Source of the DNA: Pelomyxa schiedti
Lineage: Eukaryota; Protista; Evosea
Assembly (NCBI GenBank): GCA_020536535.1
Contig: JAHLWZ010000846.1
Coordinates: forward strand, 15,373-79,372
Length of the DNA: 64,000 bases
Direction of reading: 5' to 3'
Shown here: piece after piece, positions 30,905-63,300 of the stretch
How the letters are laid out: the number at the start of each line of letters is the position of its first letter
How positions within the stretch are numbered: position 1 is the first letter of the stretch
The notes under the pieces: generated by a model
Told to the model about the DNA's origin: nothing
Databases searched by the model: none
Seen by the model: only the letters and a program-made list of their open reading frames with translations
Translations under genes and position numbers: made by a program

Positions 30905-32779
30905 ATGCTTCAGATCGCGGCCTACGGTGATGACGACGAAGTGGGCGAGGAGCCAGGACACAACAATGAGGGAAATAAAACAACCAACACGTCCCCTGCT
31001 ACCACAACACCGACAACCGCTTCCACATCAACAACAGCAACCACCACGCCCCCGGCGGCGGACCCAGGGACTGAGGTGATAGAGACCGCGGCCGCAGCGC
31101 CGCTGCTGGCCGACATGAAGAGCAAGATGTGCCTGCCGTCGCTGACGCCCGACGTGCTGGACCCCGCGGGGCGGCGGGCGTTCACGACGTCGACGCAGCG
31201 CGAGGTGTACTACAACCCGACGGCGGACGACCTCAACACGCCGCAGAAGGGCCCGCTGCAGCCGCACCGCAAGACGCCGCTGGGCTTCGAGAAGAACGTG
31301 CTGTGCGGCTTCGCCGACGACCTGTGCATCAGCCAGAACGCCTTCAACGAGCAGTTCCACACGTTCCACTCGTTCGGCTACGCCTCCGACCCGTCCGGCG
31401 TCGGCAAGATTGTGGGAGACAAGACCCAGGTCGCGGCCCGCGGCGGCCAGTTCATATTCGACAGGCCCCCCAAGAAGGCGCCAAAGTCGGCCTCCCGTGC
31501 CAAGGGTGGGAATCCCGGCAGCGGCTCGTACTTGGGTCCCTGGGCTCCCCCGGCCTCAGAGGTTGCTGCAAATGCAAAGGCTGCCGCTGCTGAACTTGCT
31601 GCTGCCAGCGCGGCGGACGCCTCTGCTGACCAGGCGGCGGCATCATCTTCTTCTTCTTCATCAGCTACTGAGGATTCTGCTGCTACTACTGCTAAGAACG
31701 GAGAGTCGGCGGCGGAAGGAAGTGGGAGTGGGAGTGCTGCTGAAGGTGGTTCTGGGGAGGATGGCACGTCGACTGTTCTGTACCTCAAAGGGGACCGGGA
31801 CTACCGCGGCCGCACATTCATTTCTCCTCCGTCTGATATCAAAGCTGGGCCGCATGGCTGCTTCCTTCCAAAGAAACGAATTCACACCTGGAATGCTCAT
31901 GCCAAAGGGGTTTCATGCGTTCGCTTATTCCCGAAGTTTGGCCACCTGATGCTATCTTCTGGATTGGATGGCCAGATCAAGATATGGAACGTGTATGAAA
32001 GCAGGCAATGCGTGCGAGCTTACCTTGGCCATTCAAAGGGTGTGCGGGACCTGTGCTGGAATGCTGATGGTACCCGATTCCTCAGCTGTGCCTACGATAG
32101 ACAGATACGGTGGTGGGACACTGAAACGGGTGCCGTTCTTGGCTCTTTTTCAAGTGGAAAAATACCATACTGTGTGAGGTTGCACCCTGAGCCAGCAATG
32201 CAAGATCAGTTCCTAGCAGGCTGCTCCGACAAAAAGATTGTACAGTTTGATATCCGTACACGCGGGATAGTGCTAGAGTATGACCAGCACCTGGGGGCAG
32301 TAAACACAGTCACGTTCATCGACTCCAACCGCCGGTTTGTAAGCAGCTCCGACGACAAATCCCTCCGAATTTGGGAGTACGGGATACCGGTGCCAATCAA
32401 GTACATCAGCGAACCACACATGCACAGCATGCCGAGTGTCACAGTTCACCCGAACGGCAAGTGGTTTGTCTGCCAGTCACTGGACAACCAAATACTGGTG
32501 TATAGTGCCCGGGACAGGTTCAAGCTCAACCACAAGAAGCGGTTCATTGGCCACATCACAGCCGGCTATGCCTGCCAGGTGAACTTCTCGGCCGACGGGC
32601 ACTACCTTATCAGCGGGGACGGGGAAGGTAAGCTGTGGTTATGGGACTGGAAGTCGTGCCGGGCATACCAGCACCTGCAGGCCCACGAGACCGTGTGCAT
32701 TGGCTGCGAATGGCACCCAGTGGAGCCGTCGCGAGTTGTGACTTGTGGGTGGGATTCCAAGGTGCACTACTGGGACTGA
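30905..32779 (+). CDS. CDC40: Pre-mRNA processing factor 17 (PRP17/CDC40), WD40 protein, intronless
   Basis: YNPTADDLNTPQKGP, FHTFHSFGYASDPS, DYRGRTFISPP, WD40 repeats, EPHMHSMPSV and GWDSKVHYWD*, all in one continuous 624-aa ORF. Confidence 0.95.
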   Translation: MLQIAAYGDDDEVGEEPGHNNEGNKTTNTSPATTTPTTASTSTTATTTPPAADPGTEVIETAAAAPLLADMKSKMCLPSLTPDVLDPAGRRAFTTSTQREVYYNPTADDLNTPQKGPLQPHRKTPLGFEKNVLCGFADDLCISQNAFNEQFHTFHSFGYASDPSGVGKIVGDKTQVAARGGQFIFDRPPKKAPKSASRAKGGNPGSGSYLGPWAPPASEVAANAKAAAAELAAASAADASADQAAASSSSSSSATEDSAATTAKNGESAAEGSGSGSAAEGGSGEDGTSTVLYLKGDRDYRGRTFISPPSDIKAGPHGCFLPKKRIHTWNAHAKGVSCVRLFPKFGHLMLSSGLDGQIKIWNVYESRQCVRAYLGHSKGVRDLCWNADGTRFLSCAYDRQIRWWDTETGAVLGSFSSGKIPYCVRLHPEPAMQDQFLAGCSDKKIVQFDIRTRGIVLEYDQHLGAVNTVTFIDSNRRFVSSSDDKSLRIWEYGIPVPIKYISEPHMHSMPSVTVHPNGKWFVCQSLDNQILVYSARDRFKLNHKKRFIGHITAGYACQVNFSADGHYLISGDGEGKLWLWDWKSCRAYQHLQAHETVCIGCEWHPVEPSRVVTCGWDSKVHYWD

Positions 32780-53337: not shown

Positions 53338-53560
53338 GTCCGTGGTACAGCCAACCGTCATCCCAGTTTCTTCCTGTCAACGAGAAACATAAAAGAAGAA
53401 GACCCTCACTTGCCCGGAACCAACAGCACATCCACACTTGCCAAAAAGATCTTTTGTGCTTTTTGTACCCAAGCTATCCTCTTGCAACTAGGAGTAGAAA
53501 CAAAAATGGAATGAATATATTCCTACATCACACAAATCACCACACTCTCTGGTGCTTTCT

Positions 53561-56500
53561 TTACACACCAAACGTTGGGTTCTCAGTGGGGGAGGGAGCG
53601 TGGATTGGCCAGTGGACAGAATCGAGCTGTGATACCAGGGGCCCGGTTGTAAATCCCAGCCTGTTTGTGAAGAAGTTGAGTGAGGGGTGGGACGTGGCCA
53701 CCGAGCACAGCTTCCTTGGGTTGCCAACAACTTGCTTCATAACGCTCTGCACAAGCATTGTACCGATCCCTTGCCGTTGGTATTTAGTTGATACTGCCAC
53801 TTGGTACAGGAACCTGGATGGGGGTTAGAGAGAGTTGGTGTGTGACCTGTAGTGTTGTTGTTATTGTTTTTTGTTGGTATCATTATTATTACCCTTTTGG
53901 TGGAAAAGGAGTGGGATAATATTGATTTTTGTAGTGCCATGGTTTTTTTTGGGTGACAAACCATGGGTATTGGGAGGCCATTGCTTTCCGGGATTCTTCA
54001 ACCAGGCCGACCATTTTTCTTGTGTGGGACATGACATTTTTTGGAGAAACGGGCAGTATCCTGCTCTCTGGTGGGCACAGTATTACAACAGCAATAAGTG
54101 AATCCCGTTCCATGAGAACAAATAACATCTAAAATCAATTGGTAAGTTGTAATCATGTGTCACAGCACCGCACCCAAGATGAAATTTGTGTAGTCAATAG
54201 CTTTTTATAAAAAGCTGCAGCTTTTTCATTCCCTTTTTTCCCCTCCAAGGAGCGCACACCACCAGTGAATTGTTGTTTGAAAAATTCGTCTGTCTGTAAT
54301 GCCTCAATCAACAAGTCGACAATCTTTCATTTTCCAGGATTAGAGTGCAGAATGGGAGAAAGAGTACTTACTTTCAACACTATACCCTTCAGAACCACGT
54401 GTTGTGTTATTTTTCCCTCTCTAGAAATAGCATTTATGCCTCCGAAGGGTCTTTCTTGAGCTGAAGGGGTTAACAAAACCTCAGATGATGTAAACCTCTC
54501 GGAGATGATCATGCCCTCAAAGGGTCGTGAGGAAGATGACGAAAGTGATATCGAACGAGTGGGTGGTGGGTTACGCTCGGGTGATGGGGATACAACGGAG
54601 TTGTTGTGTGAAATATTAAGGCATGGTGTGGAGGCACTAAGGCTGGACGTGGGTGGTGATGCTGATCCGGCGGAAGTTCTCAATTGAGAAACCCGGGCAC
54701 GAACTTCTGGAGGGCTTGATTGTTGTGGGGGACTTGTCGTTCCTGGCGTTCCAATGAGTGGTTCACTTGCTTTGAGTGGAGTTGATGGGTGGGTGAGCAG
54801 ATAGGGATCACATGCCTTGGTGCCTGACCTCATAGTTTGTGTTGTATACAGTGATGGGACTGGGGGTTGTGGTTGTCTCGGTGGTGGCATCGTGTATTGA
54901 GATGGAGGATGTGGTGCCACTAGAGTCTGAGGAGTTGACATTGAATACTGGGAAGAAGGGGGATGAGGGACATACTGTGGAGGCTGGATGTTGTATGTTG
55001 AAATAGGTGGATGTGGTGAAAGGGATTGCTGAGGTGGCATGGTATATGTTGATGGAAGTGCTTGGAGTGAAGATTGGGTTGATGAGGAGGGTTGTGATGG
55101 AAAAGAATTTGCACCAGATGTTACTAAAGAGGACTGGTGAAGGAAACTATGCAAAATCCAATCTTGAATAGCCTGGATTTTGGCTGAGGGATCTTCATTG
55201 AGATAGCCATTCAGCCACTGTGTGATTTGTCGAAAAGGCGGCCTGAAAAGAGGTGAACATTTCCTTACAGAAGGAAACGGTACCTGGAGGAAGTTGGCAT
55301 TGCCCAGCACTTTCGAGAGACAAGAAATGAGAGTGTGCATCAAGGAAAAGGAGTTCAAAGCGCACACCTTTAACATGATCTCATAGATTGGTTGTGGACA
55401 AGTATCGGGACAAGGGAGGCGTTGCCCTTGTTCTAGAAATTCTATTACCTCCACCACTCCAGCAAGTTTGGAATATGGCAAAGCGCACTGAGTCCACATC
55501 TAGTGTGCATTTAGGTGCTGCTTTAAAGGAGAAGATAATCAACCTCCCACATCACAACCCCGAAACTGGAAGATTTTAGAAGAACAACTTTTTAAAAAAT
55601 ATTGGCTGTACCTCCAGACATCAGACTGTATAGTACATTCATTGTCCCTAATCCATTCCAAAGCACACCATCTAAACGGCATTACTCGGGTAGATGGTCT
55701 ATAGACATTATCAATCAATACACGACCAAGACCGAAATGTTAGAGTGGTTAAGGATATGCAAATGACACGTTCTTTCATTGACGAAGGAAATAAAGGATA
55801 TCTGCTATCTGCCAACTGTTAGTTTCGCGAGGATGAAAATCGAACACACTTTAGCACAAATACTCTTGTCTTCAAATTTGTATAGCACATTGCGGCATGC
55901 TAAGTCTCTGTTTGAGAAATTATGCTTAGTTTCTTATCCTCCACTTTTAACCAAGATATACCTGTGAATAATTGGTGGTTGGTGAGTAGACAAATACTCC
56001 ATTCCAGAGCACGCATCCTTACAGTGTGTTAACTTCCTCTAGAGGATAAAGAAAGAAAAACTTTGGCAATCTTAGCTAAAACTTCAGATGAAGGGTGAAA
56101 TTTTTTAATCAATTGATCAACTGATCCCTCAGCGAGTTCAGTTACAATATATTGTTTTTCATTGAATACAGCTATTCCTACGGAGATTCTGAGTGTACAC
56201 TTGACAAACTTCGTGCCTCACCATAAAAAGAGACAATATTGGGGTGCCGTAAAGCTGCTAATAAATCCACCTCACGACTTAACTCGCGGTATAAATCACT
56301 GTCATGGAGCTCTTTCATCGCAACAGGTGTTGCTTCACCCCATTTGCCTCATTGTGAAGTAAGTTTCTGAACAATTATAGTGACAACCAAACCTTTCCAA
56401 ACCTATTTTAGAGTGTGAGATAGATGGCCTGCTGAAGTGATAACAAATTACTTTGCCAAAATTGCCACTGCCAAGCAAACTCTCTGGTACAACATCAGTC

Positions 56501-57363
56501 AAAACAGATGTCTCTGCAGATATTGTTTTAGTGACTTGCTGCTGCTGGTTCAAGCAAAGGGTAACATAGGTTCGAATTTTTCCTCTCTCCCCAAGGTTTA
56601 CACCCTAAGAATGTCAGGCTTTTGCTTTGATTCTTTTCTTTGTCATACAAGAGAATTATAGTTGTCATCCGTCAGTCCATTCATGGAGGCGACAGTATCC
56701 AGTCCTTGTTGGAAGAAAATCTTGGAAGGATAAGAAATCATATAGAAACGGGGCATACATTGGATAGTTCTATGGCCCTTTGTTCCGGTATTGATATATC
56801 TTTGAATATTCTCTCCAAGTCTGCTTGTGACAAAATTGTTGTGAAGCCAAAAACATAGCTCAAGGAGGCCACACTGTATCTTTGTCAGTGCGGAGGGGAA
56901 AAAAAAGAAAAAAGTAATGATAATAATAACCACTAACAACGTGGACCACTGACCTTAATTGCCTCGGACTCAGCGACCCAGTGGCACCACTAGAAGGCAA
57001 ACCAAGGGACAAACTCGACAAGTTTGGCAATCCCAAGCTACGCGGCGACACCGCTCCCCCGCCCCCGCCTCCTCCTCCCCCCCCGCCGGTCCCCAGCGCC
57101 CCGCCGCCTCCCCCTCCCCCCTCGCCGTTGAGGCTGCCGCCTGCCCCCACGCTCGAGGACGCCGGCGCGGTGGGCGAGAGGAGCAGCGAGGGCACGAACG
57201 CGGGGGAGCGGCCGCGGGCAGGCGGCGGCGGGTGCGGGCCGTAGGCCGAGGCGCCCCCGGTGTAGGACGACGTGACGACGACGCTGGGGGGCGTGGTGGG
57301 CTCCGTGGACAGGGAGGGGGGCGACGATGCCCGCGTGTTGGTGGTGATGTACATCGACGACAT
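53561..57363 (-). CDS. SAM domain - tyrosine kinase - Pro/Ser linker - GNAT acetyltransferase fusion
   Basis: SAM LTDDNYNSLGVNLGERGKIR; kinase LGSGNFGKVWKG, VAMK, LRHPNIV, IIHRDLACRNVL, KIADFGLGR, MPFRWCALE and SDVWS; GNAT FLYQVAVSTKYQRQGIGTMLV...LNFFTNRLGF. Phase-compatible introns join the linker to the GNAT. Confidence 0.8.
55739..55801 (-). other. U12-type (minor spliceosome) AT-AC intron, 63 nt
   Basis: 5' end ATATCCTTT, branch site TCCTTAAC (55755-55748) and terminal AC. Removal gives G+AT TTC GGT = DFG. Confidence 0.92.
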
Positions 57364-57986
57364 TGAGGTGAGGGCTGGGGTGGGTGTGATCGCCGCTCGG
57401 CTCGGTACTCACTGTTCCTTCTGGTTTTTTTTTTCCCTTTTCCTCTCGCGGAGCTTTTTTTCTTGTTACGTTTCGATGCAGAAGTAGCTAAATATGGTCT
57501 GCGGGCCGCCAGCATACTAGGGCAGGAATGCTCCACTGACGAGCGGTTGCTCAATGCCCGGGAGAAACAACGGATACGACTCTTGGGAAACGCAGCAGAC
57601 CAGGGAGTGTTGGTTAAGCCCCCTTTCATTTTTTTTAAACTCGAAAAGACAATCCTCCTATTTTCCCTGTTTTTGTGCTTCGCAAAAAACAGTTCGGCAA
57701 TACAAAAAAATAAAAAGTAAAACCCACTTAACCAACAGCGATGTCTGACGGTAACGTCGTCCCCCCCCTTCCCATTATTTAAGTCGCGTTAGACCACCAC
57801 GCACTCTCCGTCGATGCGCCCAACCGCCGCAAACACCACAACACCAAACTCCCCAAACCAACCAACCAACCGATCCCATAACTAGCCGTTGCACGTGCAC
57901 GCGAGCAGTGGGCCAAGGCACGTAACGTCGGGGCCACCCCCGCGGCCACCAGCACCACCCCGGCGGCCCCCCTGCCCCTTCCCCCC

Positions 57987-60388: not shown

Positions 60389-63300
60389 ATGTTGTCTGAG
60401 GTGACAGGTGGTGACAGCATTCCCCTGCGTCGTCTTTTTTTATTTTTATTCGTGTGTAGATACCAATGGGGATGGCGCCCTTGACACGATGACTGCATCT
60501 ACGGCTACCGCTTCTATGCTCACTTCAGTCGAGGCTCCTGCTTTACCTCGTGCCAATTCATACTCTGTTGTGACGGCAGATTCAAACACAACAAAGTCCA
60601 CAAACACATCCGAAACAACATCGACGACCGCAACCTCAACAACCTCGTTATCGACAGGTCGTAGTGTGAGTGCGAGTGGCAACGGGGCGAGCACTGCAAA
60701 TAATTTGGCAGATTCCGCAGGGTCTGCCTCTGCCATTTTGAGTGCTGCATCTCCTGTTTTAACCACCACTCCCTCTCTGGCTACTAACGAGGACGACTTA
60801 ACAGTGCTGACACTCTCTGAGGATCGCTATGGGTTTCCTCTCAATACTGAGGAGGCTAAGCGGTACTTAAAGTATGCCCCACAATACGAAACCAGGGACG
60901 CCAAGATGGAGCGAAAGTGGGATGCTATGTGCAAAAAATATAAGTGGGATATTACAGGGTTTCCTCCAAGTGCGTACTGTAGTTCTGGCCTTCAATCCTA
61001 ATATTTTTTACAGGGTCGGAATTAATGCCTTACAATCAATTCCGAGCTCTTGTTCTGAAAGGTGTACCAAGGAAATATCGAGCCGATGTAAATCTCCTGC
61101 AAATGGAACTCCTTTCTAACCAACACAACATTTAAGTTATGGAAGAAATTGAGTGGCGCCTGTGAACTACAACTTAATGAAGAACCTGGCTACTATGCTC
61201 AGCTGATTTCCAACTCCTCAAGTGTCATACAAACAACCGTCCGTGAGGAGATTGAGAGGGTAGGTCCATTTTACAGACCCAATTCTCAGCTCCCGTTTTA
61301 GGACCTTGGGCGAACTTTCCCTCATCATACTTTATTTTCTCAAGTGGATTCCTCCATAGTTCAAAGCATGCGGCGTATACTGTATGCCTATTCTACAAGA
61401 AATCGTAGTGTTGGATATTGTCAAGTATCTCCCCGAGAACTTGTAGGGCTGTTTAAGCTTCAGAATAGGGTATGAATATGCTTACAGGATGGATGCTTCT
61501 CTTTCTTCCTGAAGAGGACACATTCTGGATTCTTTGTGCCATCGTTGAATATATTTGCCCTTTGTACTATACCCAAAATATGATGGGGTGTCAGGTTTGA
61601 TAAACTCTCAAGTTTGCAAAGTAAATGGAATATAGATTGACCTGAGAGTTTTTGGAGATTTAGTAAAGCAAAACCATCCCAAAGAGTTTGAGCATCTAGA
61701 GTCACTGTGCATCTCCCTTCCACTTGTCACCACAAGGTGGTTTTTGTGTGCATTCATAACTGTGGTCCCTTCTGAAGTATTCTTTCTCTAGTTCAGGCAC
61801 TTTCTGTCCATTGACTTAGTTCCCAATTTCAGACTTGCCTTCGTATATGGGATGCCTTTCTCTTACACGGAACTATGATTCTATTTCGTGCAGGGGTGGC
61901 ATTGATCAGACTCTGCTCAAAAAAATTCATGAGGTACCTTCTTATTAAATCCTCGTCTTGACAAATTACAGTGCTGATTCAACTCTTCAAGTTGTAAAGT
62001 TTTTCCAGGACTTCCCTGCAACAGTGTTTAATCACAGTAAACTTTTTAAGGTCAGTGCAACTTTGGGGTGGGAGGGGATTATCTCCTTGACTTGGCGCTC
62101 AGCTTATTGAAGCCATGAGCCACATTACATATAAACGAGTTGAGTTCATGCACGCCAAGTACGAGGATGAGTTGAAACGGGAAACCGAAGAAATTCATAG
62201 AGCGAGAGATGTGCAACATCTTGCAAGGTTCACGAGCTGTATGCTTTCTCCATCAAACTCTCCCTTCAACACACTCCAGTTACCCGTGAAGAACTTGAAA
62301 GATTTTGGGATCAAGTTTCCAAACTCAATAATGTTGATCGTAACACCAGAGGAAGCGTTGTGTTCAATTTCGAACAGTTTCAAGGCATCCTTTCTAGTAT
62401 AGGTATCATTTTAGTAGTAAATCCCGTCATTGATATTACTTAGTTCCCGGGTGGCAACCAAATACTCCTGCCATGTTGCAACTTTTTAAGGTTTGTATTT
62501 ACTCTCATTTTTGTTATTGATCAGAGGAAAAGATTTTTGATGAAAATGGAGACAACAGACTGGATTTTCGAGAGGTTCTTTTAACTTTTGATTTGAGTTA
62601 TTAGTTTTTAACTTGAATATAGCTCATGACAGGCCTGTCTTTACTCTCTAAAGGATCGCTGGAAGACAAGCTTATGTGTAAGCAAGATCCCTCTTCATAA
62701 ATTTAATCACTTTCACAAGTATGCTTTCGCACTTACGACCCAGAAAACAAAGGATACATCAGGTTGACTAAGTGGTTTTATATTTCCTAACCCCTCTCCA
62801 GCAAAAGTGCTGTTGTTGATATGCTGTTTAGTGTGTACAAAAATTCTAGTCCTGCATTGGTTGCAAAGGACCCCGAGAAAATCATGTGTGCTTTAAAGGA
62901 CCTTGTGGATAAACTCTGTGTGCATCTGGGCATACACGGAGATATTCCTCTTTCCTTTGAGGTTTCGTTGTCTTTTTACCATCATTCGTCTCATTTTCAA
63001 GTGTACAATAGGACTTCAGACAATTTGTGAATTGCCAGCCTCAACTGATAGAGCATTTTGTTGTTACTGACCACTGTGAAGCGGAGATGGACCCCCCTTC
63101 TACACACACATCAAAGAAGAAAACAAACCCTAAGTATCAGCAATATGACCTGGACACACTACTGTATACCTCAGTTGGGCATGCAAGAGGTGCAGTCATT
63201 AAGGATTCCCTGCTAGGACAAGACGGGAAACCTGCCAAGTCAAAAAGCAAAAGGGCTAGCATAGGATCGAAATTTGTATTGATGCCGTCAACTGAAAATC

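Follow-up and report, generated by a model that had tools for sequence, protein, structure and literature searches.

A predicted U12-type AT-AC intron inside the DFG Asp codon of a tyrosine kinase gene of Pelomyxa schiedti

Introduction

Classical AT-AC introns of the U12 type (Hall and Padgett 1994; Tarn and Steitz 1996, both as cited in PMC10639083) start with ATATCCTTT, carry TCCTTAAC near the 3′ end, lack a polypyrimidine tract, end with AC, and interrupt the reading frame in a non-zero phase. A short spacing between branch site and intron end is expected for U12-type branch sites (PMC8329584). The pan-eukaryotic survey of Larue and Roy (2023), whose criterion for the presence of minor introns includes at least two minor snRNAs, reported 90 minor introns in the archamoebid Pelomyxa schiedti (PMC10639083). 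This catalogue was derived from the deposited annotation (PMC10639083). Among the annotated P. schiedti introns (n = 149,016), 98.41% are GT-AG, 1.59% are GC-AG, one is GT-GG, and none is AT-AC (PMC8887013). Mastigamoeba balamuthi and Entamoeba were reported to have neither minor snRNAs nor minor-specific proteins (PMC8136499).

Here I describe a 63-nt intron in a tyrosine kinase gene of P. schiedti, an anaerobic amoeba. The gene lies in a 64-kb stretch of DNA (the window; all positions refer to it), the end of contig JAHLWZ010000846.1 in assembly GCA_020536535.1. The intron is very likely a true AT-AC intron of the U12 type, and its excision is predicted. The intron has all the above traits of the classical AT-AC introns. 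Unlike them, it is only 63 nt long, resides in an archamoebid host, is preceded by an exon of 7 nt (or 3 nt), and is known from sequence alone. It shares both the species and the intron class with the 90 reported minor introns. Thus, it adds a new, well-formed case to a class that the species is already reported to have, and general knowledge of minor splicing is unchanged by it. It also resembles known cases of U2/U12 crosstalk (PMC8329584), in that U2-type introns flank a U12-type intron and a limiting role of minor splicing in expression has been suggested. However, the known crosstalk concerns exon definition in vertebrates with exons of normal size (PMC8329584), whereas the Pelomyxa gene has introns of about 40-60 nt and the exon shared by the two introns is probably 7 nt long.

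Results

Position and sequence signals of the predicted AT-AC intron

The features of the locus, in the direction of transcription, are as follows.

55850 to 55907, minus strand: upstream exon, 58 nt, encoding the tyrosine kinase domain's catalytic loop, (H)RDLACRNVLYKFEDKSICAK
55809 to 55849, minus strand: probable U2-type GT-AG intron, 41 nt, with a GTGTGT start, a CAG end, and ACTAAC at 55823-55818 as its branch motif
55802 to 55808, minus strand: putative micro-exon ATAGCAG, 7 nt, giving two residues, Ile and Ala, plus the opening base of the Asp codon in DFG, as deduced from frame and motif
55739 to 55801, minus strand: predicted U12-type AT-AC intron of 63 nt, which interrupts the DFG Asp codon in phase 1 (G/AT)
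55793 to 55801, minus strand: U12-type 5′ splice site ATATCCTTT, matching the AT-AC consensus at 9 of 9 positions
55748 to 55755, minus strand: U12-type branch-point sequence TCCTTAAC, with the likely branch A at 55749 or 55750, 10-11 nt from the 3′ end of the intron
55739 to 55740, minus strand: terminal AC of the AT-AC intron, the sole 3′ end restoring DFG and the frame
55612 to 55738, minus strand: downstream exon, 127 nt, encoding (D)FGLGRVLIDNVYRPSTRVMPFRWCALEWIRDNECTIQSDVW(S), from the activation segment through subdomain IX

The minus strand reads GCTAAA/GTGTGT...ACTAAC...GGCAG/ATAGCAG/ATATCCTTT...TCCTTAACCACTCTAAC/ATTTCGGT, where slashes mark the splice boundaries. With longer flanks, it reads TGT GCT AAA/GTGTGTTCG...GAAACTAACAGTTGGCAG/ATAGCAG/ATATCCTTTATTTCC...GCATATCCTTAACCACTCTAAC/AT TTC GGT CTT GGT CGT. 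Thus, the sequence and the layout given in the initial annotation (a 41-nt intron, a 7-nt exon, and a 63-nt intron) were found in place. The octamer TCCTTAAC occurs as a single copy in the 64-kb window. The spacer between it and the intron end, CACTCTAAC, has no polypyrimidine tract. The distance of the likely branch A from the 3′ end falls in the span of about 8-20 nt that is expected for a TCCTTRAC branch sequence. The AT-AC intron is the longest of the 11 introns in the kinase domain, the other ten being 41-58 nt in length. A nearer AC at 55745 was rejected as the 3′ end because it creates a stop codon (GTC TAA). If the 63 nt were retained, the frame would read IADILYFLRQ and then stop, 10 codons into the intron.

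The predicted spliced protein

Removal of both introns gives ...HRDLACRNVLYKFEDKSICAK-IAD-FGLGRV..., which is part of an intact tyrosine kinase domain of 254 amino acid residues. After splicing of 11 short introns, this 254-residue ORF contains all the landmarks of tyrosine kinases: GSGNFG, VAMK, HRDLACRN, DFG, PFRWCALE, DVWSFG, and CW..P..RP. The first five follow the series GxGxxG, VAxK, HRDLAxRN, DFG, and PxxWxAxE of the protein tyrosine kinase family (PF07714), whose domain spans about 250 residues. The domain matched retrieved tyrosine kinases with E-values of 1e-56, 7e-44, and 7e-39. In the best match (E = 1e-56), CAKIADFGLGRV aligns without a gap to KIADFGLARV. The junction likewise opens no gap in the kinase alignment, where CAKIADFGLGRVLIDNVY stands opposite C-KIADFGLARVVKDDVY.

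The individual exons agree with this. Parts of the exons correspond to PF07714 positions 27-68, 146-188, and 198-237. In EGFR and SYK chains, the counterpart of RDLACRNVL from the upstream exon is HRDLAARNVL, with the weak E-value of a 28-residue query. The downstream exon matches PF07714 (PK_Tyr_Ser-Thr) positions 146-188 with an E-value of 2.3e-6, and its initial F stands opposite the F of DFG in the ErbB4 and ErbB2 structures. This Pfam match and the ErbB alignment indicate that the sequence from 55738 onward is coding. The missing Asp can come only from the G of the micro-exon and the AT that follows the intron. Sequence and homology give good support both to the U12-type AT-AC identity of the intron and to the need for its removal to make the DFG Asp, as originally claimed.

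The gene ends in an exon that encodes an acetyltransferase motif of the GNAT type (PF00583, E = 1.5e-7). The gene architecture is SAM (with a question mark), tyrosine kinase, linker, and GNAT. A search of representative proteins for the annotated product of this gene returned distant tyrosine kinases only, and a homologue search gave no match, either with the 390-residue ORF or with an alignment of two sequences that widened the length filter.

Chance expectation and enumeration of splice solutions

Both strands of the window were scanned with a strict U12 pattern, namely RTATCCTT, followed 20-150 nt on by TCCTTRAC and, 5-15 nt after that, by AC or AG. The pattern occurs once in the 64-kb window, whereas 200 shuffles gave a mean of 0.01, an expectation that does not include the further demand that the junction rebuild a catalytic motif in register. 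The 5′ element by itself shows no enrichment: RTATCCTT has five copies in the window versus 2.9 expected, and RTATCYTT is not enriched in the window either. Relaxed U12 scans of the window gave only weak candidates besides the AT-AC intron. The GTATCCTT at 62757 on the minus strand was dismissed as a U12 intron for want of a coding context. With a single strict match and no other strong candidate, the intron is indeed the sole U12 intron detected in the window, as had been noticed at first reading. One U12 intron per 64 kb would fit a genome total of no more than some hundreds. Physarum polycephalum, an amoebozoan like Pelomyxa, has an active minor spliceosome (ref. 20, as cited in PMC10639083), as Pelomyxa presumably does. 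Physarum is described there as having undergone massive minor-intron gain, in contrast to the single strict-consensus U12 intron in the 64 kb of Pelomyxa DNA.

Splice solutions with one, two, or three introns were then enumerated exhaustively for the interval from the HRD exon to the MPFRW exon. When only GT-AG and GC-AG introns were allowed, 153 combinations were in frame and free of stop codons with introns of at least 20 nt (121 with introns of at least 30 nt). None of the 153 restores DFG. The claim that no GT-AG solution rebuilds the motif therefore holds, even when up to three introns and GC-AG sites are admitted. When AT-AC was permitted, every solution with DFG and an intact activation segment (12/12) ends its intron at 55739, and 10 of the 12 use the exact intron 55801-55739.

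The upstream U2-type intron and the putative micro-exon

The 41-nt U2-type intron fits its RNA-confirmed neighbours (44-48 nt, with a CTAA-type branch about 11-13 nt before the AG) in length and in branch motif. The micro-exon that it leaves is probably 7 nt in length, judging from the frame and the splice signals. At exon position -1, the donor for the 7-nt exon shares its A with two further donors of the gene, both AAA/GT; the first AG past the ACTAAC branch motif is used; and the distance from branch to acceptor is 10-11 nt, near the 11-13 nt of the neighbours. All three points favour the 7-nt reading.

The initial annotation gave 7 nt as the length of this exon. That length is the favoured one, and a 3-nt exon CAG (55804-55802) is the alternative to it. 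With the same U12 intron, the upstream U2-type intron would then be 55845-55805 and the motif AKVSDFG instead of AKIADFG. This intron is also 41 nt in length, is also GT-AG, and leaves an equal spacing from HRD..N to DFG. KVSDFG is as typical of kinases as KIADFG, and one retrieved tyrosine kinase carries it. However, the donor of this register has a T at exon position -1, which is absent from all of the about 13 donors of the gene. The register also passes over the first AG (CAG, 55811-55809) in favour of an AG 4 nt further on, and its branch-to-acceptor distance is 14-15 nt compared with about 11-13 nt in the neighbours. The 3-nt exon is the less likely of the two. An upstream intron of 32 nt or 34 nt, with the AG right after ACTAAC, was rejected because it is too short and its branch point would lie 2 nt from the AG.

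A 7-nt exon fits the character of this gene, since other tiny exons, below the micro-exon limit of about 30 nt, are present: one of 10 nt (GTTTGGAAAG, 56402-56393, GKV-WKG-KWG), one of 22 nt, and one of 26 nt. The 10-nt and 26-nt exons were assigned by homology, while the 22-nt exon was seen in an RNA contig.

RNA evidence

Contigs of the kinase gene are present in three single-cell RNA runs. They come from the minus strand and show that the gene is transcribed and spliced. The following GT-AG introns are removed in the RNA contigs: 53961-53814 (148 nt), 54173-54129 (45 nt), 54371-54324 (48 nt), 55543-55500 (44 nt), and 55611-55566 (46 nt). The 22-nt exon 55565-55544 is present in an RNA contig, as is the 3′ part of the downstream exon (55663-55612) together with its GT-AG junction. 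From these junctions and the 22-nt exon, it follows that the gene is expressed and spliced and that tiny exons are processed in this organism. The RNA contigs are 3′-biased; they span 53400-55663, end 76 nt short of the AT-AC intron, and have no coverage in 55664-57600. RNA confirmation of the AT-AC junction is thus the main gap in the case, and excision at these very sites is a prediction.

Discussion

Could the major spliceosome alone account for the locus, leaving the AT-AC signals unused? If just one GT-AG intron, 149 nt in length (55847-55699), were removed, AKV would be joined in frame to PSTRVMPFRW, and the product would be a pseudokinase or a dead isoform. It is the only single-intron GT-AG solution that retains a long part of the downstream frame. 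A gene finder limited to GT-AG and GC-AG, as was evidently used for the published annotation, would pick something like it. Moreover, the last bases of the 63-nt intron, CACTCTAAC, resemble the U2-type branch motif of the neighbouring introns. However, the first AG lies about 40 nt past that putative U2 branch, compared with about 11-13 nt in the other introns of the gene, and 149 nt is long beside the 41-58 nt of most of them. The product would have neither DFG nor the start of the activation segment. The 149-nt intron drops 39 nt encoding FGLGRVLIDNVYR, which is a textbook tyrosine kinase activation segment by comparison with ErbB chains and PF07714. In addition, an AT-AC 5′ splice site and a branch site would have to have arisen together by chance, at about 0.01 per window even before the frame is taken into account. 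The 149-nt intron is therefore highly improbable as the true one, although an isoform without DFG may arise from it. A point against a genuine U12 intron is the minor spliceosome loss reported for the closest sequenced relatives, M. balamuthi and Entamoeba.

For the preferred reading, a U12-type intron next to a U2-type intron, the following course of splicing may be proposed. Recognition would be by intron definition, with U11 paired to ATATCCTTT and U12 to TCCTTAAC over the length of the short intron. This mode is expected because the introns of the gene are only about 40-60 nt in length, and exon-definition complexes do not fit because the shared exon of 7 nt is too short. Removal of the upstream 41-nt U2-type intron would leave the 7-nt exon (less likely 3 nt). 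Excision of the AT-AC intron would join ...ATAGCAG to ATTTCGG..., creating GAT-TTC-GGT (DFG). The U2 branch A (55819) is about 19 nt from the U12 5′ splice site (55801), a spacing that makes simultaneous assembly of both spliceosomes doubtful. Thus, the U2-type and U12-type introns are probably removed sequentially. No simpler mechanism is apparent, and it might proceed in either order. The AT-AC intron would be constitutive, as its removal would be required for any functional product. Its removal presumably depends on U11, U12, U4atac, and U6atac.

It had also been suggested that the intron acts as an on/off gate for the kinase. Slow or conditional minor splicing would then set the amount of active kinase-GNAT protein. 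Rate-limiting minor splicing is established in animals (Patel 2002; Younis 2013; Niemela 2014, as cited in PMC8329584), and a retained AT-AC intron would indeed truncate the protein at the stop codon mentioned above. However, retention of any other intron of the gene would truncate the protein too. Since any other retained intron would be destructive as well, the position in DFG has no special regulatory meaning: it adds nothing to the ordinary damage of intron retention, and regulation does not depend on the place of an intron in a motif. There is nothing specific to the AT-AC intron in this idea. I found no specific support for the gate and consider it very unlikely.

Retention of a minor spliceosome in P. 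schiedti, which had been concluded from this single intron, agrees with the 90 minor introns of the 2023 survey. For the same reason, it is already published and is not a new claim. The accompanying picture of a compact protist genome does not fit, as the genome is 52.4 Mb in size and has 7.43 introns per gene (PMC8887013). At the gathering thresholds of Rfam, a search of the 64-kb window detected no snRNA gene of any kind, U11, U12, U4atac, and U6atac included. Although M. balamuthi and Entamoeba belong to Archamoebae like Pelomyxa and have lost the minor spliceosome (PMC8136499), Pelomyxa evidently keeps U12 introns. If these are real, the loss is not common to all Archamoebae. The present intron offers a clean, motif-anchored case of the need for U12 splicing in an archamoebid, although the machinery is gone from its sequenced relatives. 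In addition, U2-type and U12-type introns only 7 nt apart would constitute a handy natural substrate for the question of spliceosome order where there is no room for both.

There is also a practical consequence for annotation. Since the published annotation has no AT-AC intron, the gene models, and any catalogue based on them, very probably lack the present one. If GT-AG alone were allowed, a predictor would probably settle on the in-frame intron 55847-55699 and yield a kinase without DFG. The kinase gene is therefore likely to be mis-annotated, and other genes probably are as well. The AT-AC intron is most likely missing from the 90-intron catalogue too, unless the boundary correction of the tool rescued it. 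Because the gene models contain no AT-AC introns, 90 minor introns is probably an underestimate.

A broader idea, put forward tentatively and perhaps going too far, is that P. schiedti has a whole class of AT-AC U12 introns of about 58-63 nt, all of them missed by an annotation limited to GT-AG and GC-AG. If so, genes like this kinase would be mis-modelled, for example as DFG-less pseudokinases. An AT-AC intron beside an exon of 3-7 nt would demand a fixed order of the major and minor spliceosomes. Given its reported absence from Mastigamoeba and Entamoeba, the minor spliceosome would not have been lost in the common ancestor of Archamoebae, and whether there was one loss or several would hinge on the branching order.

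Elsewhere in the window, exact look-ups of four neighbouring ORFs gave no match. The ORF at 30905-32776, the only one that could be placed, shares 100% identity with pre-mRNA-processing factor 17 (PRP17) of Pelomyxa schiedti; this locus ends short of the kinase gene.

Splice signals of the AT-AC intron and the GT-AG alternative

The branch site of the 63-nt AT-AC intron (55801-55739, minus strand), which interrupts the Asp codon of the kinase DFG motif, sits within ATATCCTTAAC (55748-55758, minus strand). Thus, the octamer of the U12 5′ splice site, ATATCCTT, recurs in full inside the intron, where it overlaps with the branch-point octamer TCCTTAAC. This second copy has no usable 3′ end downstream, and the overlap may be either chance or a remnant of the intron's origin. 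The final nine bases of the intron, CACTCTAAC (55739-55747, minus strand), are similar to CTCTAAC and CACTCTAAA, branch motifs in U2-type (major-spliceosome) introns of the same gene, and the branch-like motif at this 3′ end includes the terminal AC. The motifs compared with CACTCTAAC are:

53824-53830, minus strand, U2-type branch motif
about 56408-56416, minus strand, U2-type branch motif

One in-frame GT-AG intron of 149 nt is possible at 55699-55847 (minus strand). Its removal would join AKV to PSTRVMPFRW, and both DFG and the beginning of the activation segment would be lost. Gene prediction that allows GT-AG introns alone would probably select it, and the kinase gene would then resemble a pseudokinase.

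Tiny exons and short introns

The kinase domain is interrupted by 11 introns of 41-63 nt each, and the gene contains very small exons:

56451-56403, minus strand, 49-nt U2-type intron on one side of the 10-nt exon
56393-56402, minus strand, 10-nt exon GTTTGGAAAG, predicted from homology
56392-56348, minus strand, 45-nt U2-type intron on the other side of the 10-nt exon
55544-55565, minus strand, 22-nt exon, present in an RNA contig
55284-55309, minus strand, 26-nt exon, predicted from homology

The 10-nt exon is required because GKV-WKG-KWG past the glycine loop is unreadable without it; with it, this segment aligns with GEVWKGYI and GEVYAGYW of other tyrosine kinases.

Sequence differences in the DNA-like and RNA runs, and the PRP17 gene

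Compared with the window, a contig of the DNA-like run X4 carries two substitutions and lacks 2 nt at each of two places within the first intron, which is T-rich. In the 5′ coding region, which is G-rich, it has an inserted CCCC that lies 23 nt from the contig end. These differences are probably assembly noise in low-complexity sequence:

56908-56915, difference in the X4 contig
57061, difference in the X4 contig

At position 54895, in the Pro/Ser-rich linker exon, the single-cell RNA run X1 has C, while the genome and RNA run X2 have T, which could reflect an allele or variation between cells.

The window also carries a splicing-factor gene:

30905-32779, plus strand, PRP17 (pre-mRNA-processing factor 17)

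The deposited product has 610 aa, while the uninterrupted ORF encodes 624 aa, and a database look-up found that the translated locus differs from the deposited protein. Therefore, the deposited model uses another start or a small intron.
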